Shown: piece after piece, positions 3,187-63,800 of the stretch | How the letters are laid out: each line of letters starts with the position of its first letter | Numbering within the stretch: the stretch's first letter is position 1 | Assembly: GCF_023055435.1 (NCBI RefSeq) | Contig: NW_025963890.1 | Location: 43,462,001-43,526,000 of the forward strand | DNA length: 64,000 bases | Direction: 5' to 3' | Source of the DNA: Haliotis rufescens | Taxonomy: Eukaryota | Position numbers and translations under genes: made by a program | The notes under the pieces: generated by a model | Seen by the model: only the letters and a program-made list of their open reading frames with translations | What the model was told of the DNA's origin: nothing | The model's database searches: none

Positions 3187-6100
3187 ATGGAGTGTCTCAT
3201 GGCGATAGCCTTCACGGTGGCATCAGGTGCGTTTAATGCCTTTAAGCTTAAGATGATATAGACGTCATGAGCTTTTCCAAACGTTACCATGAATCTTTTG
3301 GTACATATTTAGTTTCAGAGCTGACCTCATAACATGTAGCCATCATCAGAGAATGATGATGTCAAAATCAAAATCGATGTTATGATATAACATCCAATCA
3401 ACAGCTATAGCTTTGAATAAGATTTGTTGGTTTGTTGTTTAACGCCGCACTCAGCAAGATTCCAGCTATATGAAGGCGGTCTGCAAATAATCGAGTCTGG
3501 ACCAGACAATCCAGTGATTAATATCATGAGCATCGATCCACGTAATTGGGATCGATGAGATGCATCAACCAAGTCAGCGAGCCTGACCACCCGATCCGGT
3601 TAGTCGCCTCTTACGACAAGCATAATCGCCTTTTACGGCAAGCATGGACATTTCATATTTAGATATGAATTAGATATGTGTATGTGTAAGTGCCATGCAT
3701 CATTACTTTCCCAATCAACATGTGTATCAGTTTTAATGTTTTATGAGTTCATTATTCGACAGTTTGCTCTACAAGCGCACCATGTACCAACTGTGACAGT
3801 AACAACGTGACCTGTGTTGACGGTGTGTGTCCACCTCGCTGTGTCAATGTGTCGTCATCTGGAGAGTGTCTCCAGTGTCGGGACTCCAGGTTCTATGGTG
3901 AACAGTGTGAACATGACTGTCCAGACACCTGTCTCAACTCTCGCTGTCAGATGAACAACACCCGTGCTGTGTGTACAGAGGGATGTGTGGCCGGGAGGAA
4001 GGGAGATAACTGTGGCGTGAACTGTCCTAAAGCCTGTACACAGTGTGAACGTTATGGTGATGGTTGTACAGGACCGTGTCAGAATGCCCTGTATTACGGT
4101 CCAAACTGTAGAACACCTTGTTCCTCCAACTGTACAGATGGATGTAATAGGATCACGGGGGAGTGTGACAGCTGTAAGCCAGGTTACAAGTGTGATGTTA
4201 CCTGTCCCCCTAACTGTAGAGATGGATGTGATAAAGACACGGGGGAGTGTGTCAGCTGCGTGTCGGGTTACAGAGGGAAGAACTGTAATGACACCTGTCC
4301 CCCAAACTGTAGCGATGGATGTGATAAGGAGATCGGAAAATGTGATGGTTGTAATCCAGGGAACAGTGGGAAGTACTGTAATATCTCCTGTCCTACCACC
4401 TGTAGGGAAGGATGTAATCAAGACGGCGGTTGCAACGAGACAGGTAAGTTGTACACATATTATTTTATTCATTTCAATCCCACGTTGGAATAAACACATC
4501 GAAAGTAGTTATGTTGTGAATTTGCTGGTGTCACAAAGAGAGGGGGTTGTGACAGTTGTGATACTAGAAATACGATAGGGATTATTTTGTGTTTCTCTGT
4601 CTTTACTTTGGAATACATATACTGATTGAAGAGGGCCATATCAACTTAAAGTCTACATGGACTAATCCGTTGGGATTCCGGGTTAGAATAGGTCCCCAGC
4701 AACATATGCTTGTTGTACGATGGACTGTACAGATGGATGTGAAAAAGACACAGGGGTATGTGGCAGATGGACAACACCCGTGTTGTGTGTACAGAGGGAT
4801 GTGTGGCCGGCAAGAAGGGAGATAACTGTGGGGTGAACTGTCCTACAGCCTGTACACAGTGTGAACGTTATGGTGATGGTTGTACAGGACCGTGTCAGAA
4901 TCCCCGGTATTACGGTCAACACTGTAGAACACCTTGTTCCTCCAGCTGTACAGATGGATGTAATAGGATCACGGGGGAGTGTGGCAGCTGTGAGCCAGGT
5001 TACATGGGGGACAAGTGTAATGTTACCTGTCCCCCCAACTGTGGAGATGGATGTGATAAAGACACGGGGGAGTGTGACAGCTTTGAGTAAGGTTACACAG
5101 GGGACAAGTGTAATGTTACCTGTCCCCCCAACTGTAGAGATGGATGTGATAAAGACACGGGGGAGTGTGACAGCTGTGTGCCAGGTTACACTGGGACATA
5201 TTGTAATGTTACCTGTCCCCCCAACTCTGGAGATGGATGTGATAAAGACACGGGGGAGTGTATAAAGTTAGGTGAGCATTGTTATCATCTTTGAATGTAA
5301 AATGTTAGCCAGGTACATATACATGTACCAAAGACAAAGGTTAGCTACGTAATTGAGTATTTCAATATTTCAGATGTAAAAAAACGAGTACAGGGGCTAA
5401 AAGTTATCCCAGGTATTCACTCAACAACCTTTAGAGGTTTTTTTGTTATAATAATTTGAGACATTACTTCTCATTTGATAACGATGTAAAGTATTTGTAG
5501 TCAGCATTATGCATCTATGTATGTGCTATATTTTAAATGTCTATTTTTAGGAAACAACGTAGTTATTGCTGTTGTGATAATAGCAGGGATCCTGGGCCTT
5601 GTGGTTCTGAGTGTGACCATTCCGCTTGTGTGTAATCAAGTACAGAAGAGGTTTGTGTACATACCATATCAAATCTGTTTATGCAGCATTTGGTGTTATT
5701 ACTTCAAAGCAACATTATGATACAACTATCCATGATATGAAAAAGTTGAGGTCCGCTCTTGTGTGAATGATTCTGAGATCGATAACATAATGTGAATGAC
5801 ACTTCCTGAACTTCCTGAACACGTTAACAATGTTACATTGATACCAGAGAAAAGAATTCTTCTAAACACAATGGGGGGCACGGGTGGTCTTGTCATCTTA
5901 GGCGCCGCGATTCGCTGTGCAGAGTTGCGTCCCTTGGGGCAGAAACCTATGATCGTTGGTTCGAATCCCGGTTCGCCCCGATTATGTTTCTAGGTTTGTC
6001 GGCACCATACCCATGCTCGTGGGTTTTACCGAAGTGGTAACCGCCTGAGACCTGCATCACTTCGGGGATTCCTCCCACATTAAGCTGACTAGAATACTGT

Positions 6101-12005: not shown

Positions 12006-12647
12006 ATATAAGCAATTGTCAACGAATCACTATCAAATAGTGATGATACCAGGTGTTCGCGAAAAGGGGGAGAATGTCCCCTCCCTGCGGTGGCACCAAC
12101 TCATAATATATAAAGAACGAGATAAAGATACAGAAGGCCGTGTTATCTTTCTAACATGTAATATAATATACCTACACATGGTTCTTATACCTTTTTGTCC
12201 TACCCCAACATGTAATAAAATTCAATTTGGTGTAAACGTTGAATTGGCATAACAGAGAAATATCGGGTAAAACACGCACTTTACTTGATATACTTCCTGG
12301 TAAGTTTGCATTGTGTACAAAACTGATCTGTGACCTTGCACACTGCCGATACAGACCTGGGTCAAGGGCACTGAGGGGAAATATTCCCTCCTCACAGTTC
12401 GCTCAGGAGAGCGATGCAACGATATTAGACCAAGCTGCAAGGTAAGATAGCAGTGAAATAGTTGTTCAAAGCATATTAATATCCGTCATTTCTTTATTGA
12501 TAATTCGATAATCTGATTTACCTTTTTTTTCATTTTATATACTACAATAATTAACGTCGACCGTCTCTACATGCATATATGTTTGACAGTCACTTTTTTC
12601 TGTTATGAAACTCTGTATTTCAACAGTGACCCAACTCGTGGGTGACC

Positions 12648-15445
12648 ATGGCGACCCTAGCTGTGACGATCACACTGGTCATCTTGATATCAGGTACCTA
12701 TTTGCAATTTATAGAAATAGTATATATCAGTGAAATAAGCTTTGGTCTTGGATTTTTGTCATTTTCGCTCACTAAAATGTATGTAAACATAGGTAAAGGA
12801 GAATGTATTTCCCTGTATCAGTTAGAAACAGGTAACATTAACTGCAAAGGGGAATATGTTTTTGAAAAGTCATCGGTGGCTGATTTGATGTTGGTTACCC
12901 GCAAGTCACTCTTATCATTTCACCAGCAGACATTTCAGCTGAACCCGTGAAGATTCCGGGGTAGAATAGGTCTTCAATAACCCATGCTTGCCGTAAAAAG
13001 CGACTATGCTTGTCGTAAAAAGCGACTAACGGGATCGGGTGGTCAGGCTCGCTGACTTGGTTGATGCATGTCATCGGTCCCAATTGCGTTGATCCCAATT
13101 GCGTTGATCGATGCTCATGATATTAATCACTGGATTGTCTGGTCCAGACTCGATTATTTACAGACCGCCGTCATATAGCTGTAATATTGCTGAGTGTGGC
13201 GTTAAACAACCAACCAACCAACATTTCAGCTGAAAGCGTTCTTAATAAATTACACAATGTCGGACTGACTGTACCCATTGATGTGACAGTGATAAGCAGC
13301 TGGAATAAAATTTCTCGAAAGATGTGAAATTTTTTTATTTTCTTAATTAGCACTTTTTTCGTCACAGTGCCAACACTTGCACCTTCCAGTGGTCTCTGTA
13401 CCGACTGTGAGGACAATAAAAGAATATGTGTTGGAGGAGTGTGTGCGCTACGGTGCGTCAATCTGACGTCATCTGGACAGTGTCTCCAGTGTCGGGACTC
13501 CAGGTTCTATGGTAGACAGTGTGAACATGACTGTCCAGACACCTGTCTCAACTCTCGCTGTCAGCTTGACAACAGCCTGGTTATGTGTACAGAGGGATGT
13601 GTGGTCGGGAAGAAGGGAGACAACTGTGGGGCGGACTGTGATGCAGCATGCACACAGTGTGAACGTTATGGTGATGGTTGTACAGGACCGTGTCAGAATC
13701 CACGGTATTACGGTCCACTCTGTAGAACACCTTGTCCCCCAAGCTGTAGCGATGGATGTGATAAAGATAGGGGGAAATGTGGTACCTGTATAACAGGTTA
13801 CCTGGGAACGTACTGTAATGTTACCTGCTCTTCCCAATCTTGTATAACATGCGACAAAGATACAGAAAAGTGTACACAATGTGATGAGAGCCACATTGAG
13901 TGTAACGATGGAGTATGTCAGGGAGAAGCCTGCCACTCAGGTAAGGGCAGAGGATGTTTGTAAAATATAATTCAAATGAAAGCCTTTGGTTTATACTTAT
14001 CTCAGCATTATCTTCCTTCTTGTTGACCAGACACCCCGACCCGGGAAGATTCCGGGGTAGAATAGGTCTTCAGGTGACTATGCTTGTCGTAAAAGGCGAC
14101 GAACGGGATCGGGTGGTCAGGCTCGCTGACTTGGTTGATGAATGTCATCAATCCCAATTGCGTGGATCGATGTTCATGATATCAATCACTGGATTGTCTG
14201 GTCCAGACTCGACTATTTACAGACCGCCGTCATATAGCTGGAATATTGCTGAGTTCGGCGTAAAACAACAAAAAAACAACAACAACCAGACACCCGTACA
14301 TGAGATATAAAGTTGTTCACCTGGCGGCAATTATTTAATCGGGTCTAAATGTAGGCGTTCTACCGCTGTTTATTTCACTCATCATACATGTTTGAAATAA
14401 TCACAATATCAAGATAGTTGCTTTATGATAAGGTCTCTGACATAAACACTGCAGTTTAAGCTGCCCTATGATTAGCTCGATTGACTTCACATTATCATCC
14501 AAATCAGTTTGAAAACATTTTAAGATCTGTTTCGACTTAAATGGACGTAAAGTAACACTTCTGCAGATATCCGTTTCATTGAAACTATTATGTGCAGTTA
14601 GACACACTTATGAATAAAAACGAACTGTAGTTTATCGAACGTTTCAGATGCCACCACAGCCTTACCAGAGAAACCCGATGGTTTGACCACTGTCCACATC
14701 TTAATGATTGTTTGCTCCGTCCTGTCAACACTTCTGTTGGTCGGGGCTCTGCAGGCTGTTAAGAAGAAATGTAAAAAACGAAGAAGGTAAAAGAGTGATT
14801 TGAGGTTTCTACAAGAATACAGATTACACATTTACCGGAAAAATGCGGAGGATTTTACAATGTTACTATGCTGGTAAATGGTGAACTCTATAAGCTTCAG
14901 TGGTTGTTTCATTGATATGCAGGTCCCACCAGGATGCTATTACAGACTCTTCTACCCAAGCTGAAGGCAGTGGATCAAGTACGTATTTGGCGCATAAATA
15001 CTGGGAGATCAACGACCAGGACGTGGGCCCTGGTATGGAACAGGCTTTGTTGACCAACAGACGCAAACAGAGCGTGGCATTCGTCAAAGAATCTGTATAT
15101 GAACAGACGAGCAAAGAGAACAGGGTGAAGGAAGAGATCGATGTTGTGCCGGATGTTAAACCCAAAGTTGATGATACTGTAATCGCGAAGGTTGATGTTG
15201 CTCCGGTAGATGCGGTAGACTGTAACAAATCAGAATGGCATCCCGAGCATATCTATGAACCTGTGTCAGGCTCCAAGTTGGAAGGTGCTGAAGGACAATC
15301 ACACACAGTCACACACGAGGATAGGCAGATGAGCAGTGAGTCTCTGCAGTTGTTGGAATTAATCGCTGCATCTGCTAATGCAGATGTGAGATATCTAACA
15401 ACACGGAGCTCTGAGGACTCACATGATGACATTAGTGATGAGTGA
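12648..15445 (+). CDS. Receptor gene 2: EGF-repeat type-I membrane protein, ~426 aa
   Basis: Exons: 12648-12693 (MATLAVTITLVILIS), 13368-13940, 14648-14786 (TM ILMIVCSVLSTLLLVGALQAV then KKKCKKRRR), 14923-15445 (LAHKYWEINDQDV, HIYEPV, VRYLTT). AG/GT junctions, 1281 nt in frame. AATAAA at 15940. Confidence 0.9.
12944..13220 (+). mobile_element. SINE-like family B, full length (gene 2 intron)
   Basis: 14-bp TSD acatttcagctgaa. Confidence 0.9.
14039..14284 (+). mobile_element. SINE-like family B (gene 2 intron)
   Basis: Family B body and tail, TSD accagacaccc. Confidence 0.88.
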
Positions 15446-17358: not shown

Positions 17359-19517
17359 CGAAGTCCGTTTCGTTGGATGGTCAAAATGGTTCTGGCGTTG
17401 ACGTTTTATATTTAATTAGTTGAACATACCATTATTTTTTACAAATTTCATTGTTATCACGAGTCCGGAAACGGAGCGTATAAAAACACCTGGGTACTTT
17501 CTGAAATAATACACGTCACCTGTGAGTACATTAATAATTGATAAACGCACCGTGTTTCAAGTAGCCTAATTGATTCGACGCTACATGCCCCTGATAAACC
17601 GTTCACTGGCCATTTTGTGGTGATATGGACCTGAGACGTTCTGATCAGGGTTGTTTATTTGATGCCAAACAGTGACCAGGTGGTACTGTGTGTTTGAAAC
17701 AGTTGTGTGAGTCACTGAGGTTGGCTGTTTTCACCACAATGTCTGCATTATTCACTTTTATAAAATCTGTTGATGGTACCGTCCCCGATAGGCGTGCGGA
17801 GGAGGTTTCCCCTAAAATATTGATGACCCATAACTTTTTGTGTTTAAAATATTTGAATTCAGAATATTTTACTCATACGTTTCTTCGACGACATAAGTTA
17901 CATTATTTTTTCTCTTTTCAAGACTAAATGCAGGAGATGGTTCTACCTTGGTTCGCTTGATTTTATGGTGAATATTATATCAATGCTCCCTGGTGAGTGA
18001 TAAATACAGAATCTCACCCGTGTGTCTTTTGGTGTTAAATATGTCGATACAAGTTTAAAGCTTGACGAGGCGTTTTATCTTTTATGGACGAGTATTGATA
18101 TATATGATATCAAAAGAGACATTCTATTTATCATCTAAACATATTCTTCCACCTTATACACTTACTAAACAGTAATAACAAGTGTCTCGGGTTTATATCA
18201 GTCGAAAGTAGATTAGTGATGTCATTTGATTTCGACGTCATGGTAACAGATGAATGTCACAATAGTCTACCAAGCATTGTGAAGAAATTTCATCGAAGTG
18301 ATATCTCCTGTGGAAGCCTGTTTTGGATGATGAAATGTAAAATATACACATAGATTTATCATATTCAGTTACATGTTCATTTGCCAAACCATTTGAAATA
18401 GATCAGTTCAAACTGGATTAGGACCTCGAGATAGGAACGTGCCTTATTTAGCTTTTTTATTGAATTTTGTAAATTCATAAACATGTTTGTAGTTATCAAT
18501 TTGTTTAACATTGCAGCCCCGTGGGATACATAATGCCCTGGTAATCTTAGTGCAACGGATATCCCAAACCTATGTTAGAGTAAAGTTGTAGGATTATTTC
18601 ACTCTGTTAAAGGGGCACAGGACATCCTCACACTGTTTCGTTTCAGGGAAGTTGGAAATTGTGTGAATCATGAAGGTAAATTGTATTTTTGAGTCTAATA
18701 TATTGTTAATGATAATTCTATCAAATTTCGTATACCTACAAATGTACATCTATTTCTATCATGTTGAATGTGTCTTGAATATTGTCTTCCGCATGCATGT
18801 TGTTAATGGTAGTTGGGTTTTTTCATCAGAGGTACATCAGTGCAGTTAATCGTTTTAGCTTGCAAATGTATTTAAACAGCACAACCAGTATCACAGCCAC
18901 CTTATTATTCACGGACATGTCCTCATGAAACTGAATCATATTTCATGAGAAAATAATAAATATTCCCGCAAATAATGTGTTAGTTATTTAATGTTTGATG
19001 GCATTCAGTGCATATCACTGTAGGCCATTAGCAAAAATATTTCCGTTTTTCCCGTGCACCTAACACAACACCGGTTTCACTTAACATATTGATTGAGTTG
19101 GGTTTAACATAATGTTGAACAGTATTAAAATTTTACCTCGCACATCTACCCTCAGTGCAGTCTTATGTACTTGATTGTGGATACGTTTTGAAAATAACAA
19201 TCATGATAGTGACTCTTGTCTGCCCGATCGAGTCTAAATGTAAACTTCAGTTCTAAAACGCTTCGCTAAAGAGCAAAGGCGACGACCGTGCTCTATCCTT
19301 TGACAAAGTACGTTTTTTATTACGTGAAAATAGGATGACGTCATCAAGCTGTTAATTTACTTCCAATTGTAATTTAGTATCCTTTTGGTGATATAGCTCT
19401 GTCACTCATGTCAATCAAGATGGCGCATTCACATCAATTATCGATCGGTGAAATATTTTCTTTGACGAAAAATATTGAATTGAATATTATTCCATGGGAA
19501 GACACATATAGTGCATG

Positions 19518-20540
19518 CTGTACACACTACTGTTCTGCACACACTACTGCGCTGTACACACTACTGTTCTGTACACACTACTGTTCTGTACACACAACTG
19601 CGCTGTACACACTACTGTTCTGTACACACTACTGTTCTGTACACACTACTGTTCTGTACACACAACTGTGCTGTACACACTACTGCGCTGTACACACAAC
19701 TGCGCTGTACACACTACTCTGCTGTACACACTACTGTTCTGTACACACTACTGTTCTGTACACACTACTGTTCTGTACACACAACTGTGCTGTACACACT
19801 ACTGCGCTGTACACACAACTGCGCTGTACACACAACCGCGCTGTACACACAACTGTGCTGTACACACTACTGTGCTGTACACACAACTGTGCTGTACACA
19901 CAACTGCGCTGTACACACTACTGTTCTGTACACACTACTGTTCTGTACACACTACTGCGCTGTACACACAACTGCGCTGTACACACTACTGTGCTGTACA
20001 CACTACTGCGCTGTACACACAACTGCGCTGTACACACTACTGCGCTGTACACACAACTGCGCTGTACACACAACTGCGCTGTACACACTACTGTTCTGTA
20101 CACACTACTGTTCTGTACACACTACTGTTCTGTACACACTACTGTTCTGTACACACAACTGTGCTGTACACACTACTGCGCTGTACACACAACTGCGCTG
20201 TACACACAACTGCGCTGTACACACTACTGTGCTGTACACACAACTGTGCTGTACACACAACTGCGCTGTACACACTACTGTTCTGTTACACTACTGTTCT
20301 GTACACACAACTGTGCTGTACACACTACTGCGCTGTACACACAACTGCGCTGTACACACTACTGCGCTGTACACACAACTGCGCTGTACACACAACTGCG
20401 CTGTACACACTACTGTTCTGTACACACTACTGTTCTGTACACACTACTGTTCTGTACACACAACTGCGCTGTACACACTACTGTTCTGTACACACTACTG
20501 TGCTGTACACACTACTGTGCTGTACACACAACTGTGCTGT
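19518..20540. repeat. 17-bp minisatellite CTGTACACAC[TA]ACTG[TT/CG/TG], about 60 copies
   Basis: Directly visible tandem array with a small set of variant units. Confidence 0.97.
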
Positions 20541-20689
20541 GCTCACTACCACATCAGCCACAAGCGGGCGTTGGTGCCCTATTAATTATATCTGTCTTTG
20601 GGCATAGGAATAAGCAATCCTGTTGCTCAGCATAGGGCATTTAGCAGTACACTACTCTCAAACAAGTTGCTCTTCCTCCACCATGTTCA

Positions 20690-21379: not shown

Positions 21380-22205
21380 AGTCTCGCAACGTAAGGGAGC
21401 GGGCACAGGTACAGTCTATGTGCATGTGTGTTCAGACACATATCTCAAATCTAGCTGTGAGATTGGCGACACCAATGTTGTTCAGAGAGATGTGTGGCCA
21501 GCATTTGTTTTTGTCGCCAGCTATATGACGGTGGTCTGTAAATAATCGAATCTAGACCAGACAAGCCAGTGATTGACATCATGAGCATCGATCCACTCAA
21601 TGTCGATACGATGACTGAAAATAAGTGATGACACCAGGTGAAGCAGCGAAAAGAGTAGCATGCCCTGCCCTACCGGTAGCACCCGCCATTCATACAATTT
21701 GCATAAAAAAGTAAGTATCTATTGCCTGACGCAGTGCAGCAGTACTCCTTCCATGCGACGTCAGCCTGTAAACAAAAAGACGATCACGTGATCGATGAAC
21801 CAGAAAACCCAGTGACATGAGAGTTCTATTACTGATTATGTTGAAAACGTTGAGAAATATATTCATTTTGCAACACAGTGGGGCGCATTTTATACGACAA
21901 TGTGAGCGTCGTGGTAATGCGTGTTTAGACAAGTGTTTCAATCCTCGTTACTGCGCAACACTGTATTCGAAACGGTGTCCAGGAAGGTGTAGAGATGGCT
22001 GCGACAAAGACACTTAATGAGTTTGACAGATGCATGAAAGGTTAGATAGGGAGGTACTGCAATTGCTCTTGATATTAACACCACGCATGCCACCTTTGGA
22101 TGAACTTTGTGATGAACACTGGCAACTTTCCCTGACTGCATAGATGGGAATAAATGAAAGGATTACTGTCACCAGACATGTCCATTCAATTGTACTACAT
22201 GTTTC
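21380..22205 (+). pseudogene. Decayed relic of an additional receptor ectodomain exon
   Basis: 21405-21503 aligns by eye to the core ectodomain DNA (cagacacatatctcaaatctagctgtgagat...gatgtgtggcc). 21898-22014 reads QCERRGNACLDKCFNPRYC...CPGRCRDGCDKDT*, and 22161-22202 reads DYCHQTCPFNCTTC. Repeat fragments interrupt it. Confidence 0.7.
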
Positions 22206-40903: not shown

Positions 40904-40951
<48 letters not shown>

Positions 40952-42481: not shown

Positions 42482-42767
42482 GAGTGAGTGAGTGAGTGAG
42501 TTGGGTTTAACGCCGCTTTTAACAGTATTCCATTCATATCACGGCGTGTCAGCTTAATTGTGGGAGGAAAGCCCGAAGTGATGCAGGTCTCAGACGTTTA
42601 CGACTTCGGTGAAACCCACGAGCACAGGTATGGTGCTGACAAACCTAGAAACATAATCGGGGCGAACCGGGATTCGAACCCACAATCATAGGTTTCTGGC
42701 GTGCCCAAGGGACGCAACTCTGCACTGCGAATAGCGGCGCCTTAGACGACTAGGCCACCCGTGCCCC
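42482..42767 (-). mobile_element. SINE family A, full length
   Basis: TSD ggttattatac. Confidence 0.9.
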
Positions 42768-43576
42768 TGGTTATTATACAAGCATATGTGTCATAGTGAT
42801 ATTATGGTACGAGTGTCATACTAATATTACGAAACGAGTGTATTACCCGAGCGAGAGGGAGAGTCAGGGTAATACATGAATTCTTACACGAAGTTCGTAA
42901 AATAAGTACGATACACATGCGAGTGTGATAATTTCTTTATTACCCATTATTTCGTAATCCTTTTGAGTTCCCCTCAAAGAATAATCTACTGATCACGATC
43001 GTCGTCTTAGAAAGCTAAAATTGTCGAATGACGTCAATTATCTTCAGCTATGACGTCGTTTCTCGTGTGACGCCATTCCGACCTTACGTAACAATACGAT
43101 TCGAATGACGTCAACAATGCCGGCCAGATGATGTAAACAATGCACTGGTGGGCGTGAAGTTATATTTGCACTAGTGCACATACGACTTTTATGAACTCGG
43201 TTATTTCTAACCTTATGGGTAATATACTGGAAAACAGAACTACCACGATCCAAATGTATGTAGGACGTATACGTCGTATCACATTTGACCGCATCATGAA
43301 GCAACTAAACAATAGGTTTGTTTGAACAGTTTCCAGATCAAAGTAGTTGATTGAAACCTATGGATCATGTGGTACATTTTCATTGAGCTAGATAAATGAG
43401 CCTGTGTAAGAAGTTTCGAATATTCTTACAGATAATTTAAAGTGAAACAGTATTCCAGAGCGCCATCGTCCACATCATTCGAACAATGTGCGATGTACAT
43501 GTAGTATTGTTGTTCTCGAGAGGTCAAAGTCAACTTACGGAAGAGAGTTTATGGATGTCAACTTCTTTATTATGAG

Positions 43577-43856
43577 AAGTGAGTGAGTTGGGTTTAACGC
43601 CGCTTTTAAAAGTATTACAGTTATATCACGGCGTGTCAGCTAAATGTGGGAGGAAAGCCCGAAGTGATGCACGTCACATCAGACGTTTACCACTTCGGTG
43701 AAACCCACGAGCACGGGTATGGTGCTGACAAACCTAGAAACATAATCGGGGCGAACCAGGATTCGAACCCACAATCATAGGTTTCTGGCGTGCCAAAGGG
43801 ACGCAACTCTGCACAGCGAATCGCGGCGCCTTAGACGACTGGGCCTCCCGTGCCCC
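43577..43856 (-). mobile_element. SINE family A nested in the Penelope-like arm
   Basis: 12-bp TSD ctttattatgag. Confidence 0.9.
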
Positions 43857-44107
43857 CTTTATTATGAGGAACACAACGTGTCGAAGAATATGCTTACTCC
43901 TTCATCAGGTGAATGAATGCCATGAGGCAGAGAGGATATAAATGTACATGTAAGGAAAACAAAAGTAATAAGATAACAAAGGTGGAAACTAACAGGGGAG
44001 GCCAACAGATAATTTCCGCTGATGGGTGATGAGCAAAAGACACTGGATACATGGTTATGGAAAACTGGACAACTGGACAATATGCTCTCTGCCTCATAGC
44101 CTTCATT

Positions 44108-47333: not shown

Positions 47334-47352
47334 TATATTTCTTGATATACAA

Positions 47353-48577: not shown

Positions 48578-51359
48578 ATGCCATCAAGGACAACATTCTC
48601 GGTGGTCCTGAACTCAGTGGTGCTGACATGTATTCTGCTGTTATTTCCCATTGAAGGTTAGTAAAGGAATAATGTTTCACATGTAGTCAGAAGCCTGGTA
48701 GATCATGGACTCATTAATTCAAACGTTTCGAGGAGTGAAATAGTGTTTCATTTGAAGGAGTAAATGGATGCTAGATAGTTTGATTACATTTATTTTATTT
48801 TTCCATTTTGCAAGGTGTTTTCTTTTGTGCTGACATCTCTTTCCTGTGTTATCTCTGCCTTTTTCTCACTGCAACGACAGCTCCTACATCAACGACACTG
48901 TGTAACGAGTGTGACGGTAACAACGTTACCTGTGAAAATGGCGTGTGTCTACTACGTTGCGTCCGTTTGACGTCATCTGGAGAGTGTCTCCAGTGTCTTG
49001 ACTCCAGGTTCTATGGTAAACAGTGTGAACATGACTGTCCAGACACCTGTCTCAACTCTCGCTGTCTGATGAACAACACCCGTGTTGTGTGTACAGAGGG
49101 ATGTGTGGCCGGCAAGAAGGGAGATAACTGTGCCTCTTCTTGTCCTTCGTCCTGCTCACAATGTGAACAGACAGGAGATGCCTGTATTGGACCATGTCAA
49201 AACGACCAGTATTACGGTTCACAATGTGAAACTCCCTGTCCTGATAACTGTTTGGATGGCTGTAGGAATGACACGGGGAGCTGCAAAAGCTGCGTGGACG
49301 GTTACACAGGAGAGTACTGTAATGGATGTGTGGTGGGCTACAGTGGGGGGTACTGTAACATTGCTTGTCCCCCACACTGCCTGGACGTATGTGATAAAGA
49401 CAAGGGTGAGTGTGGCAGCTGTGTGACAGGTTACACAGGGACGTTCTGTAATGAAACCTGTCCCTCCAACTGTACTCCGTGTGAGCAACGTAATGGGCAG
49501 TGCATTGGACCATGCCCCGACAGCCTGTACTACGGCCCTTTCTGTTCTATACAATGCCCTACAAGTTGTGCGGGATGCGACAAGACGACAGGGAGATGCA
49601 TTCTCTGTGCCGATGGCTACACACAGTGTACGGACGGTCTCTGTCAGAAGGGTGACTGTGACTCAGGTGGGTGGTACACATGAACTTTTGCCTAAACATC
49701 AAACATGTTCATATGCTATTTAATAGCTATTAAAAGTATATCGACATAAGTCTATTTGATATTGATCCATAAACACATGCTCATCATATAGTCGGAATCG
49801 AACAATCGCCTTCTATTGACTAAGAGAGGGGTTTTGTCACTTTTATTTTATCTAAAATGTAATTTTCGTTTTAGTGAGGATTTGACAAACAAGTTAAGAT
49901 AAAATGATGTCTTTAAAAAGAAACAAAATGACTAGAATATAACGAAAGTACCTCCTGTCACTGTCTCCGATATAATATTATTTACATTGGTATACATGTG
50001 TGTGATATGATTTACAATGTACATGTAACCGTTTTTTTCTATTAACACGTTTCAAACGTTAGATGTGCGATGAATTAAATATTTCATCTTGTCCTTTCAT
50101 TAAAAAGGGAGGGCAATATTACAATGAAGTGCATACATTATATCCGTGTTGGGAATCGAACCTGGGCTTTCTGCGTGACTGGCGAAAGGCTTTAATGACT
50201 CGCAATTGACTTGTCTTTGCATGTGTTTGTGACGTGTACCGGTGGGGCGGGATACGCTCGCATTTTCTCGAACACCTGGTTTCTTTATTATTTGATAGTG
50301 ATTCATAAACACTTGCTCATGACATAGTAGGGATCGGAACAGTCGACTCTGCTTTGTGCAGATATTTCTATTGGATATGGAAGGGGTTTTGTAGCTTTAT
50401 TTATATCTAGGCTACACCTCGCTTCGAACATAATAAACAGTGTACTCATATTTGTATTACTACAGGTAACACGATTTTGACTCTGAAAGTGACAGCTGGA
50501 GTGCTGGCGATGGCTGTGTTGCTTGGAACGATCTTGGCGGTGGTCATTCTGGTCAGACGCAGGAGCAAATGCCAACACGGGTAAGAATGTTAATGTACTA
50601 TCATAATCACATAGCAAATACATGTTTAGAATACGTCCATAATATTAGCTTCTTGTTTTCTCATATGCAAACACAGTTGTGAATGTGAATCTGAAATTTT
50701 AGAATTGAAAGTGTTTAAATTATATGTCACTTTCAGAATAATGTGCTTGAATAATGATTCATCAACACTAAGGGGACTATTTACTAAACTGCACTTTTTT
50801 TCTCAATAGTGAGATGTCTCCCCGTCAAGACATTCCACAGGACCTTGGTCAGAGTGACAGCAATGAATACTGGGCCCACAAATACTGGGAAATACATGAC
50901 AAGGAATCTGGCTCTGAATCTGGGTCAAACATCTCACCTGTGCTCCCGTTACCCTATAGACGATCTGAACAAGCCAAGGATATCCCCCTAGGAAATGTCA
51001 CAGTAAGGAAACCAATGCCGTATAATACTGACGTGTCACCGGCGGCTGTGGTACACCAGGATGGACATGATTCGACTTATGAACCATTTGTTGTGGAATC
51101 GCCACAGTCGGACGTGGTGGACAGTGTCGTGGCTGGTGCAGCAGAGGAGGACATCATGGGTACGACACTCAGTAACTCTGGTCCTCGGACAAATCAGGAA
51201 GGGGGCGGAGTCATGAAGAATCCCATCCAACCTCATATTCAGCACCTTATCAGAAAGACGGAATCTATAATAGCTATTGAACAACATCTTGATTTAGCAA
51301 ATATCAATGTCAAATATCTTACACCTGATAAAGTTAACACCAGTTCAAATACATTATAA
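48578..51359 (+). CDS. Receptor gene 5: EGF-repeat type-I membrane protein, ~509 aa
   Basis: Exons: 48578-48656 (MPSRTTFSVVLNSVVLTCILLLFPIE), 48881-49666, 50466-50580 (TM VTAGVLAMAVLLGTILAVVILV), 50810-51359 (YWAHKYWEIHDKE ... LIRKTESIIAIEQHLDLANINVKYLTP). 1530 nt in frame. AATAAA ~51436. Confidence 0.9.
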
Positions 51360-51657: not shown

Positions 51658-53132
51658 TTATATACTTTGTACTAAGTTTGTGATATATGTAAAAGCAGAG
51701 TCCATTGTACGATTCCGACTATATCACAAACGTGTGAAACGTGTCATAAATACATGCAAAGACAAGTAAATTATTCACCCGAAAATACACTGGAACATAT
51801 GGTACAATTCAAAATAGGGAATTGCAATGGACATCACTTTTGTCACTGATGTGTCAAATTTGGAAATACCAATGCTTCTTATCCCTTGAAATTTAGATAA
51901 GGTTGATGTATGTTGGATGTAGGATAAGCAAACACGAACATGATAAGACGTTAAACAACTTATCAATTAAAACTACAGTTTTTGTGTATGTCAAACATCT
52001 CCCCTATAATCTCCATTACTACCGGAAGTATTCCATTGTAGTGTGTAATTTACGAAACAGTCACTGTTGCAAGTTCTTCTTTGACAAGGCATTGAAAACG
52101 ACTACGCTAATTTCATTCTGAAATATTAAACAGTACATATTTTAAACTACATTCGAGGCTCTACCATAATTTTGACAATGACATGTGATATATTTTTGCA
52201 AGAGGCCCACATTTACCTGAACATTTAACAAGTGAATGAAACTTGTGAGACATACATTTTTATGCATCATCGAACGCCATGTTTTATAAGACGTGCACAC
52301 ACACACACACACTCACACACACACATGTATGTAATACTTAACCAAAATATGTGTATATCTCACAGGTATATGTACATGCCATAGTGTTTATGTTACAGTT
52401 GATGTGTAAAATGTGATCTCAATATATAAAATGCCTTAATATTTCTGTCATTTTACACATTGACTGCATATGTTTTCCCCTGCTTATCAGACTACACGAG
52501 GAAGACCTCCGAATACAATCATCTGACACGAACACTATTTTAGAGTAAAATCACATCTCACTCTTTGGAAAGTAGCATATAAATGCATTTAATAATAATC
52601 CCACATTAACTGTTTACATAATGATGTAATGATTTCGACACTTAATTTGATCAATCTTGAAAGATAATAAAAAAACAACAACAGCTATTTAAGCTTCCTG
52701 CAATTGATTGTTGATGTGTATTCACGTGATAATATTACATTAATAGAACATTAAATATAACATCATTAGTTTCAGTTTGGATTTCCTTGCAACGAAGGTC
52801 ACACGGACAGAATAGTTTTACAAAAGTTCAGATGAGTCATATATGTGCATGTAGGCACGTCGAAAACATGCGTAAGCATGCGGTTTCAATATTTTTTCAA
52901 GATTTGTGTATTTGAACGAACATATGCCTCTCCTGACAGCGCATGACAGGGTTGCAGTTATCCTTTCCTCATAATGTTTGTTTTGTTGGTTAGGAGGAGG
53001 ACAGTATAACGTGCAACTAGTTTCTTAAGAAGACAGCTGCTCACTTCCAGTCGTAACTAGTTGAAATCACCAGTAACCATTTGGATACATCAGATTGATG
53101 AAGGTAATTATAACTTTGGATTATGTAAAATA

Positions 53133-53416
53133 GTGAGTGAGTGAGTGAGTTGGGTTTCACGCCGCTTTTAACATTATTACAGTTATATCACGGCGTGTCA
53201 GCTTAATGTGGGAGGAAAGCCCGAAGTGATGCAGGTCTCAGACGTTTACCACTTCGGTGAAACCCACGAGCACGGGTATGGAGCTGACAAACCTAGAAAC
53301 ATAATCGGGGCGAACCGGGATTCGAACCCACAATCATAGGTTTCTGGCGTGCCCAAGGGACGCAACTCTGTACAGCGAATCGCGGTGCCTTAGACGACTG
53401 GGCCACCCGTGCCCCC
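53133..53416 (-). mobile_element. SINE family A, full length
   Basis: TSD ttatgta[a/t]aata. Confidence 0.9.
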
Positions 53417-53692
53417 TTATGTATAATATCATGAGGTTTGTTGCGGGTTTATTCAAGGTACAAATACAGTGAATAAGATGGTGAAAATAAGCTTCTGATT
53501 GCTTGGTGACAGAACCTTTTGTGCGTTTGATTTGGGATGATAAAATATATTTCGAAAAGTTTTAAATTTTGAACTCGTGAGTGAGTTTGGATTAATGCCG
53601 CTTTGGGGAGTATTTCAGTTATATCACGGCTAGTCAGATTAACGTGAGAGGAAACACGAAGGAATGCATACGTACGGTAACCTCTTTTATGA

Positions 53693-53862: not shown

Positions 53863-54013
53863 TCTCTTTTATGAAACCCACAGGCAAAGGTAGGAAACTA
53901 AACAGGACAAACAGGTATTCGATCCCATGATCATAGTGTTATTATGAAACTGTTTGATAAAACGGTCATAGTTCTGTTACTTGACGTGTCTTACTGTGTT
54001 TCTGTATAGAAAT

Positions 54014-57000
54014 ATGGCGCCTTTCGGTTCGATATTGCGACACCCGGTGTTCTGTGTGGTAGCGGCCATCTGCATGGTACCCGTCACAGCAGGTTTGTTT
54101 TTAACACCAATAATTTATGATAAATGGAGAGTAACGATCATGAATACTTTTTAGTAAACAATGTTTAAAGCTGAAACAAATACAAATATACTGTTCATAT
54201 TGCCTATTCGAAATATTGCAGATTGCGATATATACTTAAACAATTTGTAGTCATTTCTGGTTTCCGAGCTCAAAAGTTGTATTTTCAACGGAGACCGTTT
54301 ATAATCTAATGTACTAAGTGTCATTGTTATGATTCTATTAAGAATGTTGCAATTCCATTGATTAAAAAAGTACCAGGTGCCGAAACAATACATTTCAATG
54401 TAGACCTCCAAATCATGTCTCGTCTGACTTGTCACATGATCAGTATTGACCCTTCACGTGATGAATATTGACTCGTCTGCTAGAAACAAGATGGCGTCTT
54501 GTATACTACCATTTTCCGCTTTGCAGCTAAGTTACTGTAAAGAAACAGATAACGGCTTAATGGCTTCATAAATTTGAAAGTGAATTTCGGTATAACAAAA
54601 CAACTGATTACTTTTGACAAGGTCATTATGCGAAAAAAAGGAGCCTCGGACCCGACTGATTCGTCGGTCTGACGAGACCCCGGCCGTCGGTCTCGATCCG
54701 GTCAGACGATCTCAGGGGTCGGGTCCTCGGGTCCTTGTTTTCGCATATGGACCTATTAAGAGTAATTTTTTGTTTATTGTTTATCACTTTTTGTGAAAGG
54801 TTCTTCAGTGTGCTCCTCCTGCACCGGTAACAACGTGACCTGTGCTGACGGTATATGTCTGCCTCGCTGTGTCAATGTGACGTCCTCTGGAGAGTGTCTC
54901 ATGTGCCGTGATTTCATGTTTCACGGGGTACAGTGTGAAACCCTCTGTCCACACACCTGTCTCAACGCGCGTTGTCAGATGAACAACTCCCATGTTGTTT
55001 GCAAAGAGGGATGCGTGGCTGGCAAGAAGGGAGATAACTGTGGTGTTGACTGTCCGCCATCTTGTACACACTGTGTAGGGGATGAATGTATAGGTCCATG
55101 TTTGAACCCCCGGTATTTTGGTCCTAAATGTAAAACACCATGTCCCGAGGACTGTAATAGTGGCTGCGATAAAAACACAGGGAAATGCAAACCATGTTCT
55201 GTAGGTTACATGGGGGAGCACTGTACCACTGTTTGCCCCTCGGGATGTAAAGATGGGTGTCACCAGGAGACAGGGGCATGTAACAGCTGCATGCCTTGGT
55301 ACGGTGGGGACTATTGTGACGTTTGTCAGACAGGGTACCGCGGGAAGTACTGTAACATTAATTGCCCAGCCTTATGTACAGCGTGTGAGCGCCATGGGAA
55401 TAAGTGTATCGGAGCTTGCCTGAATATTTGGAATTACGGTCAATATTGTAATCTCTCATGCCCATCCAACTGTAGAGAGAGGTGCCAGAAGTTGACGGGG
55501 GAGTGTGATGGTTGTGTACCGGGGTTTAGAGGCACATATTGTAACGTTACCTGTCCAGTAAACTGCACAGAGTGTACGCGTCTTGCTGATGAGTGTGTGG
55601 AACCGTGTACTGACAGCAAGTCCTATGGAGCATCCTGCCAACACCACTGCCCAGTCAACTGCAAGGACGGCTGTTACAGACTGACGGGCGACTGCATCAA
55701 CTGTAACCCTGGTTACAGAGGGAGATACTGTAAGCTTCCGTGCAGCAATGGAGCATGTAATCCAGGTGAAGTTATTACAGGAGACTGTTTACACCCCTTT
55801 GGATTTTCTTTAGAAATGAGTGAGTGAGTGAGTGAGTTGGGTTTAACGCCGCTGTTAACATTATTCCAGTTATATCACGGCATGTCAGCTTAATGTGGGA
55901 GGAAAGTCCGAAAGTGATGCAGGTCTAAGACGTTTACCACTTCGGTGAAACCCACGAGCACGGATATGGTGCTGACAAACCTAGAAACATAATTGGGACG
56001 AACCGGGATTCGAACCCACAATCATAGGTTTCTGGCGTGCCCAAGGGACGCAACTCTGCACAGCGAATCGCGGCGCCTAAGACGACTGGTCCACCCGTGC
56101 CCCCTCTTTAGAAATGGTATATGGTATATGATATTCATGCTTGGTTAAAATGAATGTATTACAGGCAGTAAAGATTAAACGGTATAAACAAATTGGAAAT
56201 ATAATCTTTTTATAGCAATGGCTGCAACGGCGTATTGATGTGAGATCAGGAGTGAAATTATGTAGAATAAGGGGTAATATAGTGGTAAATAAGAACATTG
56301 CGAAAAGCATGACAAGTTCTAGCCCATCTAGTTCTTGTCGAGGTTGTTTGATGCTTGATCAGGGTTACGGCATTCGAGGCCTCGGTGGGGCTTTTGGGGA
56401 CGTGTGGAGGACGCATCGGTGACGAAAATGCTTTTGGCTTGTGCCGTTTGTTACCGTGTTTTTTTTAGGTGTAAAAAATGACTTGCCTTTGCATGTGTTT
56501 GTCACTGGTGTCACCGATGGGGCAAGATGCAATCACCTTTTCGCGAACACCTAGTATCACCACTATTTGATAGAGATTCATAAACACATGGTAATGATAT
56601 AGTAGGAATCGTACAACCAACAAGAGATTTCTATTGAATATGGAGGGGTTGTTGTCGCTTTTAATGTAATTGCAATGGTTCCGTTTGTCATTCTAATTGA
56701 TGCGAAATATTTCTGAATATATAATCTATATTGAACTTTCAACTAGCGATGATTATGCATTCATATATATCATTTTAGGTGACCCGAGGCTGACTACGAA
56801 AGTCGTTGGTGGCGCAGTAGCTGTGGTGGTGCTGCTGGGCTTGTCTATAGCTGGGTCGGTGCTAATGAAGCGTTATAGAAGCCACCATAGGTAGGTATAG
56901 GGTCTGTAGTCATATCGTTTAAACATCATTACCTCATTAAAACGGTGTGTCACTTAAAACGATTCAACTGCATCAAATAATCTATACTTTAAACATGTTC

Positions 57001-58143
57001 ATATCAGTGCCCTGCTTATATCACTAACCCGCTTTTCTGAGATCTCACTTTAGATATTATGTCAGGAAAATTTAGAACATACTTTCAATACACATATTTA
57101 TCACATTGTATAGTTTTACAATGATACATGTTCCATTTAATCGTTATATTATTCCACCCGTGAAGATTCCGGGGAAGAATAGGTCTTCAGCAACCCATGC
57201 TTGCCTTAAAAGGTGACTATGCTTGTCGTAAAAGGCGACTAACGGGATCGGGTGGTCAGGCTCGCTGACTTGGTTGATGCATGTAATCGATCCCAATTGC
57301 GTGGATCGATGCTCATGACATTAATCACTGGATTGTCTGGTCCAGACTCGATTATTTACAGACCGCCGTCATATAGCTGAAATATTGCTGAGTGCGGCGT
57401 TAAACAACCAACCAACCAACCAACCAACGTTATATTATTCCGTTCCTTGACTAGTATTCAGTTGGTTAGATATGTTTGTCTGGTGACTAACTGAAAAGCA
57501 GTTGTGAAACAAGTACTGAACACATTCTATGTTTGTATTTGACAGTCGGGTTCCTGCCGCCGCTTGCCGAGCTGAAACAACACGTCGATGCAACTGTGGC
57601 GATTACTGGACACACAAATACTGGGAAATAAATGAACAGGACGTGAACTCGGATCAATGTTTAGAGGAAGTAGCTCGGCCCACTTCGCGTTATCCCCATA
57701 CACTGGCAAGAACAACCCGCGCTGAAAGCAGACCAGAGAAACCGGAACATGAACGACGGGGGTCCAACAAAATAGAGGAACAAAACGCCAACTCTATATC
57801 TGTTCCAGGGACTCTCAATATTGAGACATTTCAGGGGTCTAACACTGGGGCAGGATTGACAATGACTGCTTCCTACTGCGAAGCACGTCCTACTGTAATT
57901 CATGATGATGATGATGATGATGGCTTGTATCCAATTGATGAGAAAGTATCTTTTCTGAACACTGAAGGCGATCCAATACTTGCCTCAGCCAAAAGTGAAA
58001 ATGGTATTGATTATTGTCATATGTCACTTGACACCCAAAGGTTGATTAAAAAGACTGATTCGGTCCTATTCATAGAGCAAAACTGTGACATGTCCAAAGT
58101 CAACGTCAAATATCTGACCCCAAAGTCCAAACTTAAAACTTAA
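54014..58143 (+). CDS. Receptor gene 6: EGF-repeat type-I membrane protein, ~584 aa (most diverged ectodomain)
   Basis: Exons: 54014-54092 (MAPFGSILRHPVFCVVAAICMVPVTA), 54800 (or 54809)-55765, 56779-56890 (TM VVGGAVAVVVLLGLSIAGSVLM), 57546-58143 (YWTHKYWEINEQDV ... LIKKTDSVLFIEQNCDMSKVNVKYLTP). 1755 nt in frame. Confidence 0.9.
54620..54754. mobile_element. Palindromic MITE just upstream of the gene 6 ectodomain acceptor
   Basis: aggtcattatgcgaaaa / ttttcgcatatggacct ends with nested internal inverted arms (ggacccgac/gtcgggtcc, tctgac/gtcaga, gagacc/ggtctc). Confidence 0.8.
55819..56104 (-). mobile_element. SINE family A, full length
   Basis: 12-bp TSD tctttagaaatg. Confidence 0.9.
57156..57427 (+). 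mobile_element. SINE-like family B, full length
   Basis: 14-bp TSD cgttatattattcc. Confidence 0.9.
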
Positions 58144-59560: not shown

Positions 59561-59690
59561 GAAGAGAACTTATGGATGTCAACTTCTTTATTATGATCAT
59601 AATAAATAATTATTATCATAATAAAGAACTTGACATCCATAAATTCTCTTCCTTATTAAATCACTTCTGAATGCCTTTCAAAGACTGAAT
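59561..59690. repeat. Palindrome built from two inverted 3' ends of the Penelope-like pLTR
   Basis: gaagagaacttatggatgtcaacttctttattatga ... tcataataaagaacttgacatccataaattctcttc. Confidence 0.75.
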
Positions 59691-60591: not shown

Positions 60592-60703
60592 TGAGTGAGT
60601 GAGTGAGTGAGTATGGTTTTACGCCGCTTTTAGCGATATTCCAGCAATACCACGGCGAACATGACGAGCGAACGCTTTAACCACTAGGCTACCCGAACGC
60701 CCC
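60592..60703 (-). mobile_element. SINE family C, internally deleted
   Basis: TSD agtaattcaag. Confidence 0.85.
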
Positions 60704-60866
60704 AGTAATTCAAGAATGTGAACAGATGTTGGCGGATTACAACGTCATGGATCTAGACTACTCGGCTTATAAATAATTTCATTTCATCTTCCTCGTCATT
60801 AGTTTCACGACCGTTTCATAAGCCCGTATGTAGCACTTACAGGACCTGGTGCACAAGATAAGCTTC

Positions 60867-63800
60867 ATGTCAGCCATGCTGGTTATAATGAAGCTGCTGC
60901 TTTTCGTAACAGGTAAGTACTTTGATGCAAAAAAGTAAACCAGATATGATTGACTCGTTTATTGCTTTGCATTTACGGCAAACCCCTTACAATACTGAAA
61001 CTGTTATTCTTCCGTGTTTGCTGGTATAAGAAGGCCACAGCAAGTTGATGACTTCTCCGGAGTCTCCTCGTCGCCTATCTAAAATACCCCTTAATTCCTC
61101 AGATGATAATTTCTACCTTGCTGGTAGAAAGGGTAAGTGTTTCATAACATCTTCCCTTCCCTTACCCGTGAATATGTTTTGTGACATAAATCGTAACATT
61201 CATCATTACACCTGTCTTGTAATTTCCTTCGAACCGTGAAGATCCGGGGTAGAATAGGTCTTCAGCAACCCATGCTTGCCGTAAAAGGTGACTAACGGGA
61301 TCGGGTGGTCAGGCTCGCTGACTTGGTTGATGCATGTCATTGATCCCAATTGCGTGGATCGATGCTCATGATATTACTCACTGGATTGTCTGGTCCAGAC
61401 TCGATTATTTACAGACCGCTGTCATGTAAGCTGAAATATTGCTGAGAGCGGCGTTAAACAACAAAACCCAGAAGGATATTTGTAACTGCAACGTGAACGA
61501 AACAAGAGAGTTTGGGATAACACCAACTTAAAATTAGTACTACTGAATGATCGTGAGAAATGGGCTTCACACATTATACCCGTGTGGAAATCGAGCCCGG
61601 GATTTCGACGTGACGACAGACGCTTTTACCACTAGGCTACCCCACCGCCCCTGTTATCAGAGTGAAGGAGTTGTATAAACTGAGTATATCAAGGAATACA
61701 TGTTTCTTATTCTTTGAGTTGGAGTTCTAATGAAGTTATGTTTCTCACTGCAGCAATAGCTGTTTCGTCGAGTAAACCTTGTACCAACTGTGACGGTAAC
61801 AACGTGACCTGTGTCGACGGCGTGTGTCTACCTCGCTGTGTCAGTGGAGAGTGTCTACACTGTCGGGACTCCAGGTTCTATGGTAAACACTGTGAACAGG
61901 ACTGTCCAGACACCTGTGTCAACTCTCGCTGTCAGATGGACGACACCCGTGTTGTGTGTACAGAGGGATGTGTGGCCGGCAAGAAGGGAGATAACTGTGG
62001 AGTGAACTGTGATGCCGCGTGTTCGCAGTGTGAACGTTATGGCAAGGACTGTACGGGACGTTGTCAGGACCCTCGATACTACGGTCCCCTGTGTAGGACA
62101 GCTTGTCCTTCCAGCTGTCGAGGTAGATGTGATAAAGACACAGGGGAGTGTGACAAATGTGATTCAGGCTACAACGGAAGGTACAATATAAGTACATAAA
62201 ACTGTATNNNNNNNNNNNNNNNNNNNNNNNNNNNNNNNNNNNNNNNNNNNNNNNNNNNNNNNNNNNNNNNNNNNNNNNNNNNNNNNNNNNNNNNNNNNNN
62301 NNNNNNNNNNNNNNNNNNNNNNNNNNNNNNNNNNNNNNNNNNNNNNNNNNNNNNNNNNNNGCGGCATTCATTCTACAAAAGATAAAATATAAAAAAATAT
62401 ATATGGAAAATGCTTGACGTAAAAGGCGCTAACGGGATCGGGTGGTCAGGCTCGCTGACTTGATTGATGCATGTCATCGTATCCCAATTGCGTGGATCGA
62501 TTCTCATGATGTCTATCATTGTATTGTCTGGTCTCGAGTATTTCCAGACCGCCGCCATATAGCTGGAATATTGCTGAGTGCGGCGTTAACCAACAAACAA
62601 AGCAAAGGAAACGCATATGGAATACGTCATATGATAACTTATTTAGTTCTATATTTAACGTTATCGTTTACAAAATTAAATTTGTTGGAAGTTACTAAAC
62701 TGTCAAATTCATCTGTCAGTAGTGAAGAGATGTGTCTGAGATGCGGACCCCAGTTCCTCTACTGTGACGGACAGTGCTTCCAGTGCATTGGCGACAACTG
62801 CCACAACTCTCCCTGTGGGACACGTAACTAGTTTATTTTATTGCAAATATCATGGTAAACTTTATTATTAGATCGTTTATACGGAATAACAAAGTAATGT
62901 TTATTGAAACTCATCATAAGCTTCATGTTTATGTTCTTATAAATTATATACCTGATTTTACAATCATATTTAAGAATGTCGTTGTCAAAGTTGATCAATT
63001 ACTGAACAACTAGTTACAAAGACGACGAAACAATTTCCAACATTTTGTACAAATTTAAATATTTTGTCAATAATGCATTGTGAATTCCATGTATGAATCT
63101 CTCTCTCCACCCTCTTTGTCTTCGCTGGCTCAAGAAAAGTTACACTAAAATGTATATAATGTTTCTGTCATGTATATTGTTCTTTATGCAGGACACACAT
63201 ATCACATCCTACAAGTTGTATCGGGAATCCTCGCAGTGATTGTACTTATTGGGTCAGCCTGTGTTGTGGTAAATCTAGCCAGACGAAAGACCAGATGTCG
63301 AAAGAGGTAATAATTTATGTCTAATGATAAATGTTAACAAATACAAATTTGTGTTAATCGAGAGTTATCTAACCCTTTCCCTACCTCGAATAATAACTAA
63401 GTTTTAAAAGCATCTTACAGTCTTACAGTTGAAAAGGCTTGTCCAAAGACTTGTCTCCATTCGTTGAGACTCATACTCCGTCCTGATGACCATCACAATA
63501 TCAAACGAAGAGGAGAGTAGGGGACGTACTGGGGACAGAAGTTGGCTGACACTGTGGCTAGCCGACACACTTGTGTCTAAACCTTGGTAATACCTCTTTG
63601 TTATATAACCAATCTAACTGTACAATTAAGAGTGTGAACCTTTTGTTTTACAGAAAGACCACCCAGTCCGGGGAAGAGGCCACAGACGGGAGAGATGTCT
63701 CGAAGAGCGATGGCAGTGGTCATTGGGCTCACAAGTACTGGGAAATACACGATAAAGCCACAGATACCGATTCGTATGTAAGCATTTTGTCTTTAAATGG

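Follow-up and report, generated by a model that had tools for sequence, protein, structure and literature searches.

Arrays of tandem paralogs with diversified recognition parts are known from vertebrates. In the protocadherin clusters, the major histocompatibility complex (MHC) and the KIR genes, synonymous sites are homogenised within one exon sub-segment, with some members escaping. In abalone, the VERL repeat array shows concerted evolution, and its first repeats have escaped homogenisation. Here, we analysed a 64,000-nt stretch of the Haliotis rufescens genome (NCBI RefSeq assembly GCF_023055435.1, contig NW_025963890.1, positions 43,462,001 to 43,526,000 of the forward strand). This whole stretch is referred to as the window, and positions are counted within it unless they are given in Mb. 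The window lies on a chromosome of 79.7 Mb and carries seven tandem genes, all on the + strand, each with one copy of a 155-nt block (the core) that encodes a single cysteine-rich module running from 'GEC' to 'GDNC'. The conservation of this core among old, otherwise divergent paralogs is probably explained by interlocus (non-allelic) gene conversion. In contrast to protocadherin, MHC and KIR, the homogenised piece is an N-terminal EGF-type ectodomain module, and it belongs to a gastropod family with tails ranging from a short motif to a tyrosine phosphatase. VERL, from the same genus, has its repeats within one gene, whereas the tract described here spans separate genes up to 6.5 Mb apart; repetition within a gene is nevertheless also present in the abalone receptors, as 93-nt modules. 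Region-restricted interlocus gene conversion is a known process. A literature search on gene conversion in Haliotis EGF genes gave no match, and we found no prior description of the process for the abalone EGF-receptor family.

The Biomphalaria schistosome-resistance loci SudRes1 (PMC12297450) and LG5R (PMC13712769) are described, in the passages of these papers available to us, as holding paralogous single-pass MEGF/SREC-type genes and receptor-like tyrosine phosphatases with diverse extracellular parts. The abalone array resembles the loci so described in that it includes members with cytoplasmic tyrosine phosphatase domains. It differs in two respects: the galactose-binding or fucolectin domains given there for SudRes1 and LG5R were not seen in the abalone array, and no pathogen link is known for it, whereas the Biomphalaria loci map to schistosome resistance. 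The same passages report no homogenised core, and those of PMC13712769 mention gene conversion only as a general mechanism.

A repeat search of the window found the core as seven in-register copies, located at 3860-4014 (gene 1, codon frame from 3861), 13474-13628 (gene 2), 24072-24226 (gene 3), 36451-36605 (gene 4), 48978-49132 (gene 5), 54888-55042 (gene 6) and 61845-61999 (gene 7). The first 30 nt of the block had six matches in the window with two or fewer mismatches (3861, 13475, 24073, 36452, 48979 and 61846), compared with none in shuffled sequences. The last 30 nt had eight matches, six in full copies and two (4785 and 25410) in extra partial copies of the block. Pairwise identity among the cores of genes 1, 2, 3, 4, 5 and 7 was 89.0-96.1%; gene 2 was the least similar, and gene 1 was 91-95.5% identical to the other five. 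The gene 6 core was 74.8-80.6% identical to these six. An earlier note, made from the letters of the window alone, had described the block as almost letter-identical in the six genes. That observation is confirmed, with one copy in each gene, although the wording was somewhat overstated for an identity of 89-96%. Beyond the block, genes 1, 3 and 4 were 85-88% identical across approximately 680 nt of the EGF exon.

The same note had counted a family of seven, but the genome contains approximately 30 full core copies with 85-100% identity. All are on one chromosome, in two clusters 6.5 Mb apart (43.32-43.67 Mb, and 50.00-50.23 Mb with six copies). Three young subfamilies could be defined by alignable upstream introns: S1 consists of the six copies at 50 Mb, S2 of L003, L004, L024, L025 and L029, and S3 of L007, L008, L011, L014 and L019. 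The remaining copies were about fifteen single lineages, and the seven window genes represent seven different lineages. Tyrosine-phosphatase exons followed core copies L015, L022 and L006 (43.60-43.67 Mb, in the same array; two on the opposite strand), and the family proteins P0012, P0014 and P0016 carry PF00102.

The proportion of synonymous sites differing (pS) was calculated by the Nei-Gojobori method for the core and for the flanks of the same exon. Among the six similar copies, core pS was 0.06-0.21, so that identity at third codon positions, as the earlier note had claimed, was confirmed. Gene 5 compared with genes 1, 3, 4 and 7 showed a core pS of 0.06-0.10 and a flank pS of 0.41-0.84; gene 7 compared with genes 1-5 showed 0.06-0.15 and 0.30-0.84, respectively; and gene 2 compared with genes 1, 3, 4, 5 and 7 showed 0.08-0.21 in the core and 0.54-0.75 in the upstream flank. 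Genes 5, 7 and 2 thus had a core in which synonymous divergence was 5-10 times below that of the flanks of the same exon, rather than equal to it, the outcome that would have spoken against the earlier reading. L027 had the same contrast, with a core pS in the range 0.05-0.15 and flanks at 0.40-0.80. The contrast in gene 2 was limited to the upstream flank and a far downstream segment, because its low-divergence tract reaches approximately +290. Over 347 between-lineage pairs, the median pS fell from 0.31 upstream to 0.07 in the core and was 0.10 and 0.09 in two downstream segments. The low-pS region was wider than the block in most copies, genes 1, 3 and 4 among them, extending at least from relative position -70 to +345. 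Gene 6 behaved differently: compared with all others, its pS was 0.40-0.52 in the core and 0.34-0.79 in the flanks, with values of approximately 0.45 throughout. It therefore keeps the protein pattern with many synonymous changes, as previously noted, and its core has diverged at the level of its flanks. It is not alone in having escaped, since L030, just downstream of the window, is a second such lineage; compared with the rest, gene 6 and L030 had a core pS of 0.44 with the protein pattern kept.

These results bear on whether protein-level selection together with codon preference, in a simply conserved module, could have produced the pattern. The module is the best conserved part at the protein level, with 74-98% amino-acid identity across proteins of four Haliotis species; the escaped lineages diverge less in the core (13.0-18.6%) than in the flanks (37.7-51.5%); and TGT is used at 237 of 243 core cysteines. 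Synonymous sites would nevertheless drift under such selection, as they have in gene 6 and L030, where TGC appears at 3 of 9 and 2 of 9 cysteines, respectively. Moreover, genes 5 and 7 have reached synonymous saturation in the flanks of this very exon, and this contrast within one exon contradicts the explanation, which we regard as very improbable.

The mosaic structure was examined by two-breakpoint maximum chi-square tests against the main-group consensus, with 100 permutations each. In gene 5, the tract at 48968-49132 had a mismatch of 2.4% inside and 33.7% outside; in gene 7, the tract at 61773-62010 had 4.4% inside and 29.8% outside; and in gene 2, the tract at 13457-13763 had 9.1% inside and 41.8% outside (0 of 100 permutations in each case). 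Tract length differed by lineage: the gene 5 tract measures approximately 165 nt, that of gene 7 approximately 230 nt and that of gene 2 approximately 300 nt, while the tracts of genes 1, 3 and 4 and of the majority of the remaining copies reach at least 440 nt. All tracts have the 155-nt block in common, but it is not the sole homogenised segment. The earlier proposal that homogenisation is restricted to one exon segment therefore holds for genes 5 and 7 and loosely for gene 2, but not for genes 1, 3 and 4 and most others, in which low pS extends over 440 nt or more from the exon start. Furthermore, Sawyer's sum of squares of condensed fragments (SSCF) over 30 copies and 272 polymorphic sites was 1.70e6, compared with 1.25e6 ± 0.04e6 in permuted data (z = 10.9; 0 of 300 permutations). 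The nearest neighbour of the gene 5 core was L002, 6.6 Mb away, at 2% divergence, whereas the nearest neighbour of its flanks was no closer than 26-34%.

Of the words sampled from a 420-nt stretch, 42-55% were present in the read sets of five organisms. Logan contigs (contigs, not raw reads) of four organisms were aligned to positions 48700-49600 of the window at 80% likeness or more. The flanks of gene 5 were found in the four read sets at a single-copy depth of approximately 3-37 and were 94-99% alike, whereas bins in the core had a depth of 100-850, the family consensus core being present at approximately 5-100 times the single-copy depth. In X1 and X5, the ratio of core to single-copy depth was approximately 8-18, near the mean 31-mer multiplicity of 11-12.5 in the assembly. 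In the spans that they cover, the high-depth contigs differed from gene 5 by exactly the number of positions at which gene 5 differs from the family consensus (48998, 48999, 49067 and 49072), and the consensus letters were listed among the contig alternatives at 48998, 48999 and 49067. Contigs of the paralogs broke at 48968 and 49132; the mosaic test, the pS values and these contig breaks all bear on the extent of the gene 5 tract.

An artefact of assembly or polishing, in which short reads pulled the paralogs towards a consensus, is thus extremely improbable. Two points speak for such an artefact: the block is about as long as a short read, and no read set is tied to the assembled individual. 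The copies, however, keep private and common variants and differ by 4-11%; the consensus core is present, at 5-100 times the single-copy depth, in contigs built from reads of four organisms; and the same core is found in proteins of three further Haliotis genomes that were assembled independently. In these contigs the identity is carried by the reads at multi-copy depth, and it is therefore not a product of polishing.

To compare the core with sequence nearby, divergence was pooled over the young subfamilies. Introns differed by 4.4%, the core by 4.5% and the exon flanks by 7.0-7.2%; in young duplicates, therefore, the core changes at the intron rate. Between lineages whose introns are unalignable, core divergence was only 6.4%. 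Among 69 distinct variant codons in the core, 14 were synonymous and 55 nonsynonymous. Because this is near the neutral site ratio of approximately 31:122, recent change shows no sign of nucleotide constraint or of strong protein constraint. Taken together, the intron-rate divergence and the neutral variant ratio make nucleotide constraint a poor explanation of the conservation and homogenisation a good one.

Purifying selection on the nucleotides themselves, acting through an RNA or DNA element within the core (for example a target of small RNAs, a splicing element or an RNA structure) in all copies but two, would fit the several lineages that end at one 3' boundary, the consensus shared by four organisms, and L027, which has its own amino acids yet few synonymous changes. 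It is at odds with the rates in young duplicates and the neutral codon ratio given above, and with gene 6 and L030, in which a core pS of approximately 0.44 shows that synonymous sites of the module are able to drift. In addition, RNA folding of the core was no better than that of shuffled sequences (z = +0.42), and Rfam gave no core match at E up to 1. We consider such an element improbable. In the S1-S3 duplicates (relative positions -94 to +334), the exon flanks exceeded the adjacent intron in divergence (7.0-7.2% versus 4.4%), and the proportion of nonsynonymous sites differing was about equal to pS. This excess suggests either diversifying selection or the import of variants by conversion.

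The age of the lineages was assessed from the tails in a cross-species comparison made at the protein level. Tail relatives were found for gene 5 (P0015 of H. asinina, 56% identity), gene 6 (P0013 of H. asinina, 59%), genes 3 and 4 (P0004 of H. asinina, 52-59%) and gene 2 (P0020 of H. rubra and P0021 of H. asinina, 57-64%). Since these relatives in H. asinina and H. rubra are separate, the lineages are older than the splits of those species. Escaped types paired by orthology (P0008 with P0010, P0011 with P0013, and P0023 with P0026 and P0025), the cores of gene 6 and L030 pairing with P0013 and P0010 of H. asinina. In contrast, four H. asinina paralogs with different tails had in common Q at core residue 17 and a residue other than A at 43, whereas the copies of H. 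rufescens and H. cracherodii had E at residue 17 and mostly A at 43. These H. asinina-specific states, at two amino-acid sites, suggest the within-species sharing that conversion predicts. A second protein search restricted to the core returned no proteins beyond those of the first, and all matches were from Haliotis. A metagenome scan with a codon-degenerate pattern of the 3' end of the core gave no matches.

Whether homogenisation took place once or repeatedly was considered next. A single old episode before the radiation of the sampled organisms, followed by neutral drift and perhaps occasional later patches, would account for a between-lineage core divergence that is uniform at approximately 6%, independent of distance, and near both the within-subfamily core value (4.5%) and the intron value (4.4%). 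It would also agree with the one consensus in four organisms and with the neutral synonymous:nonsynonymous ratio of recent core variation. Several results do not fit it. Tract boundaries vary by lineage, and 44 of 406 informative site pairs were incompatible in the four-gamete test (153-nt core, 27 homogenised copies). Genes 2 and 4 alone (L018 and L028) have in common a two-base change at sites 105/106 that gives Ser-Leu (relative positions 100-108). The change is also found in P0020, the H. rubra relative of gene 2, and gene 3, the closest to gene 4, is without it; this distribution suggests that gene 4 acquired a short copied tract from the gene 2 lineage. Furthermore, the nearest neighbour belonged to the same intron-defined subfamily in 9 of 15 cases for the core, compared with 14 of 15 for the upstream segment, and L027 retains lineage-specific amino acids with few synonymous differences. 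We therefore think a single old episode unlikely.

The localised gene conversion that the earlier note had proposed is supported by the pS contrast, the mosaic tracts, Sawyer's SSCF, the four-gamete pairs, the intron-rate core, gene 6 and the read-set depth, and we hold interlocus conversion to be the probable explanation of the conserved core. Four observations weigh against it. Three lineages end at one 3' boundary (+155, the end of the module), for which conversion needs an added assumption. Core divergence was 0.069 at less than 30 kb and 0.054 at 6.5 Mb; because it does not rise with distance, it is unlike what frequent, proximity-dependent conversion predicts. The signature of GC-biased conversion was not seen, since GC content at third codon positions was not in excess in the homogenised core (0.55, compared with 0.57 in gene 6). 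Finally, the consensus core was letter-identical in four organisms whose gene 5 flanks differed by 1.4-5.6%, which also fits constraint. At this level of flank difference, conversion and constraint are hardly distinguishable from the four-organism comparison. One consensus in four organisms does mean that much of the homogenisation is older than their split.

In the mechanism that we propose, conversion between the large EGF exons of old lineages would repeatedly have overwritten one copy with another. Structural conservation of the core module may keep similarity sufficient for recombination to continue. The sharp boundary at +155 could arise because diverged neighbour modules stop heteroduplex extension, or because converted flanks are selected against. 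Lineages past an identity threshold, such as gene 6 and L030, would drop out of the exchange.

An extension of the conversion reading is that the core module serves as a maintained homology anchor for swapping variable ectodomain segments among receptors with different signalling tails (short motif tails, an unrelated tail and tyrosine phosphatases), which would make it a means of diversifying a gastropod repertoire of recognition receptors in the germline. We regard this as quite unlikely. The anchor would fit because exchange runs in both directions (as in the patch from gene 2 to gene 4), because the junction of a partial exon duplication sits inside the core, and because exon flanks diverge faster than introns.

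If conversion is responsible, the sequence conservation in this old family comes from recombination and not from constraint, and inferring function from conservation would be misleading here. Homogenised anchors beside fast-diverging neighbour modules may be relevant to the ways in which gastropods diversify their candidate recognition receptors. Short-read genotyping of abalone will also be affected by the common core, through mis-mapping and apparent heterozygosity.

Each window gene has a short leader exon, followed by one large exon that encodes EGF-like cysteine modules, a transmembrane (TM) exon and a tail exon. Protein searches were run exon by exon, not on joined spliced models. The EGF exon matched Pfam EGF_laminin (E = 4.3e-7) and PDB 8hna, human SCARF1 (SREC-I), with E = 2.5e-5 over exon residues 105-211. 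The EGF-like modules are alike in the two proteins, but the match to SCARF1 lies outside the core and implies no orthology. No EMI domain, the mark expected of a MEGF10 orthologue, came up when two EGF exons were scanned against Pfam, and database names are automatic. TM exons encode a hydrophobic stretch followed by basic residues, and the leaders located for genes 2, 6 and 7 are predicted signal peptides; both were read from the translations without a predictor. Judged by these features, the window genes are predicted single-pass receptors with a SREC/MEGF-type EGF-like ectodomain. AlphaFold2 modelling of the first 143 exon residues with a 17-row alignment gave a mean predicted local distance difference test (pLDDT) score of 45, with 22-36 in the core, and the model was unusable.

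EGF exons were delimited at 3763-4443 for gene 1 (end approximate; 86% identity to the gene 3 and 4 exons over approximately 680 nt), at 23975-25072 for gene 3 (the exon with the EGF_laminin and 8hna matches) and at 36354-37050 for gene 4 (end approximate). A run of 153 N at 62208-62360 lies inside the gene 7 EGF exon, which is not readable through it. Two proteins correspond to window genes: P0011 is gene 6 and maps to the window at 100% identity, and P0022 is gene 7, matching at 100% in the exons after the EGF exon and at 95% in the EGF exon.

The tail exon of gene 1 (8349-8696) is unrelated to the other tails. Those of the remaining genes are at 14921-15442 (gene 2; TM exon 14641-14760, leader 12648-12692), 27144-27692 (gene 3; TM exon 26731-26832), 40239-40742 (gene 4; TM exon 39876-39965), 50811-51356 (gene 5; TM exon 50462-50578), 57544-58140 (gene 6; TM exon 56778-56888, leader 54014-54094) and 63652-63999 (gene 7, cut by the window end; TM exon 63194-63280, leader 60867-60911). 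The three leader exons are mutually dissimilar. The tails of genes 3 and 4 have 73% amino-acid identity, and the others are 25-35% identical or unrelated, with only two short motifs in common. The earlier description of leader, TM and tail exons as barely alignable thus fits the leaders and most tails, but not the gene 3/4 pair. One motif, W-x-H-K-Y-W-E-I, lies near the membrane and is kept across the otherwise dissimilar tails of genes 2-7. The other is a C-terminal motif of approximately 30 residues ending in Y-L-[ST]-P, present in genes 3-6 only. Pfam gave no family match.

Genes 1 and 3 carry partial copies of the EGF exon in the intron that follows it. The copy in gene 1 (4714-5270, + strand) has one in-frame stop, and its start lies within the core (relative position +88); its decayed counterpart in gene 3 (25211-25700, + strand) is 91% identical to 4586-4885 and has several in-frame stops. 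In both, the core part is preceded by a fragment of a 93-nt module, and the junction, together with the intron-like sequence before it, is 91% identical between the two genes. The 93-nt EGF modules (31 amino acids) occur in tandem and in variable number at 4062-5372, 24190-25083, 36662-37147 and 49318-49473, with up to 94-96% identity between genes 1, 3 and 4. For the gene 5 unit (49382-49443), depth was multi-copy in all four read sets, and this unit is therefore a second homogenised element. An isolated EGF-module relic lies between genes 2 and 3 (21898-22202). It has 47-56% amino-acid identity to several family proteins over residues of approximately 100-150, and no core was detected next to it.

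Introns of different window genes are unalignable except for transposon copies. Short interspersed repeat families, one of which begins with a (GAGT)n run and the others of which are approximately 270 nt, are the source of nearly all intron similarity between genes; their sites include 11744-12019, 42479-42782, 43566-43871, 53128-53430 and 55815-56118. Between genes 2 and 3, a 17-nt unit is repeated in tandem at 19397-20550, in more than 54 in-register copies with approximately 90% identity.

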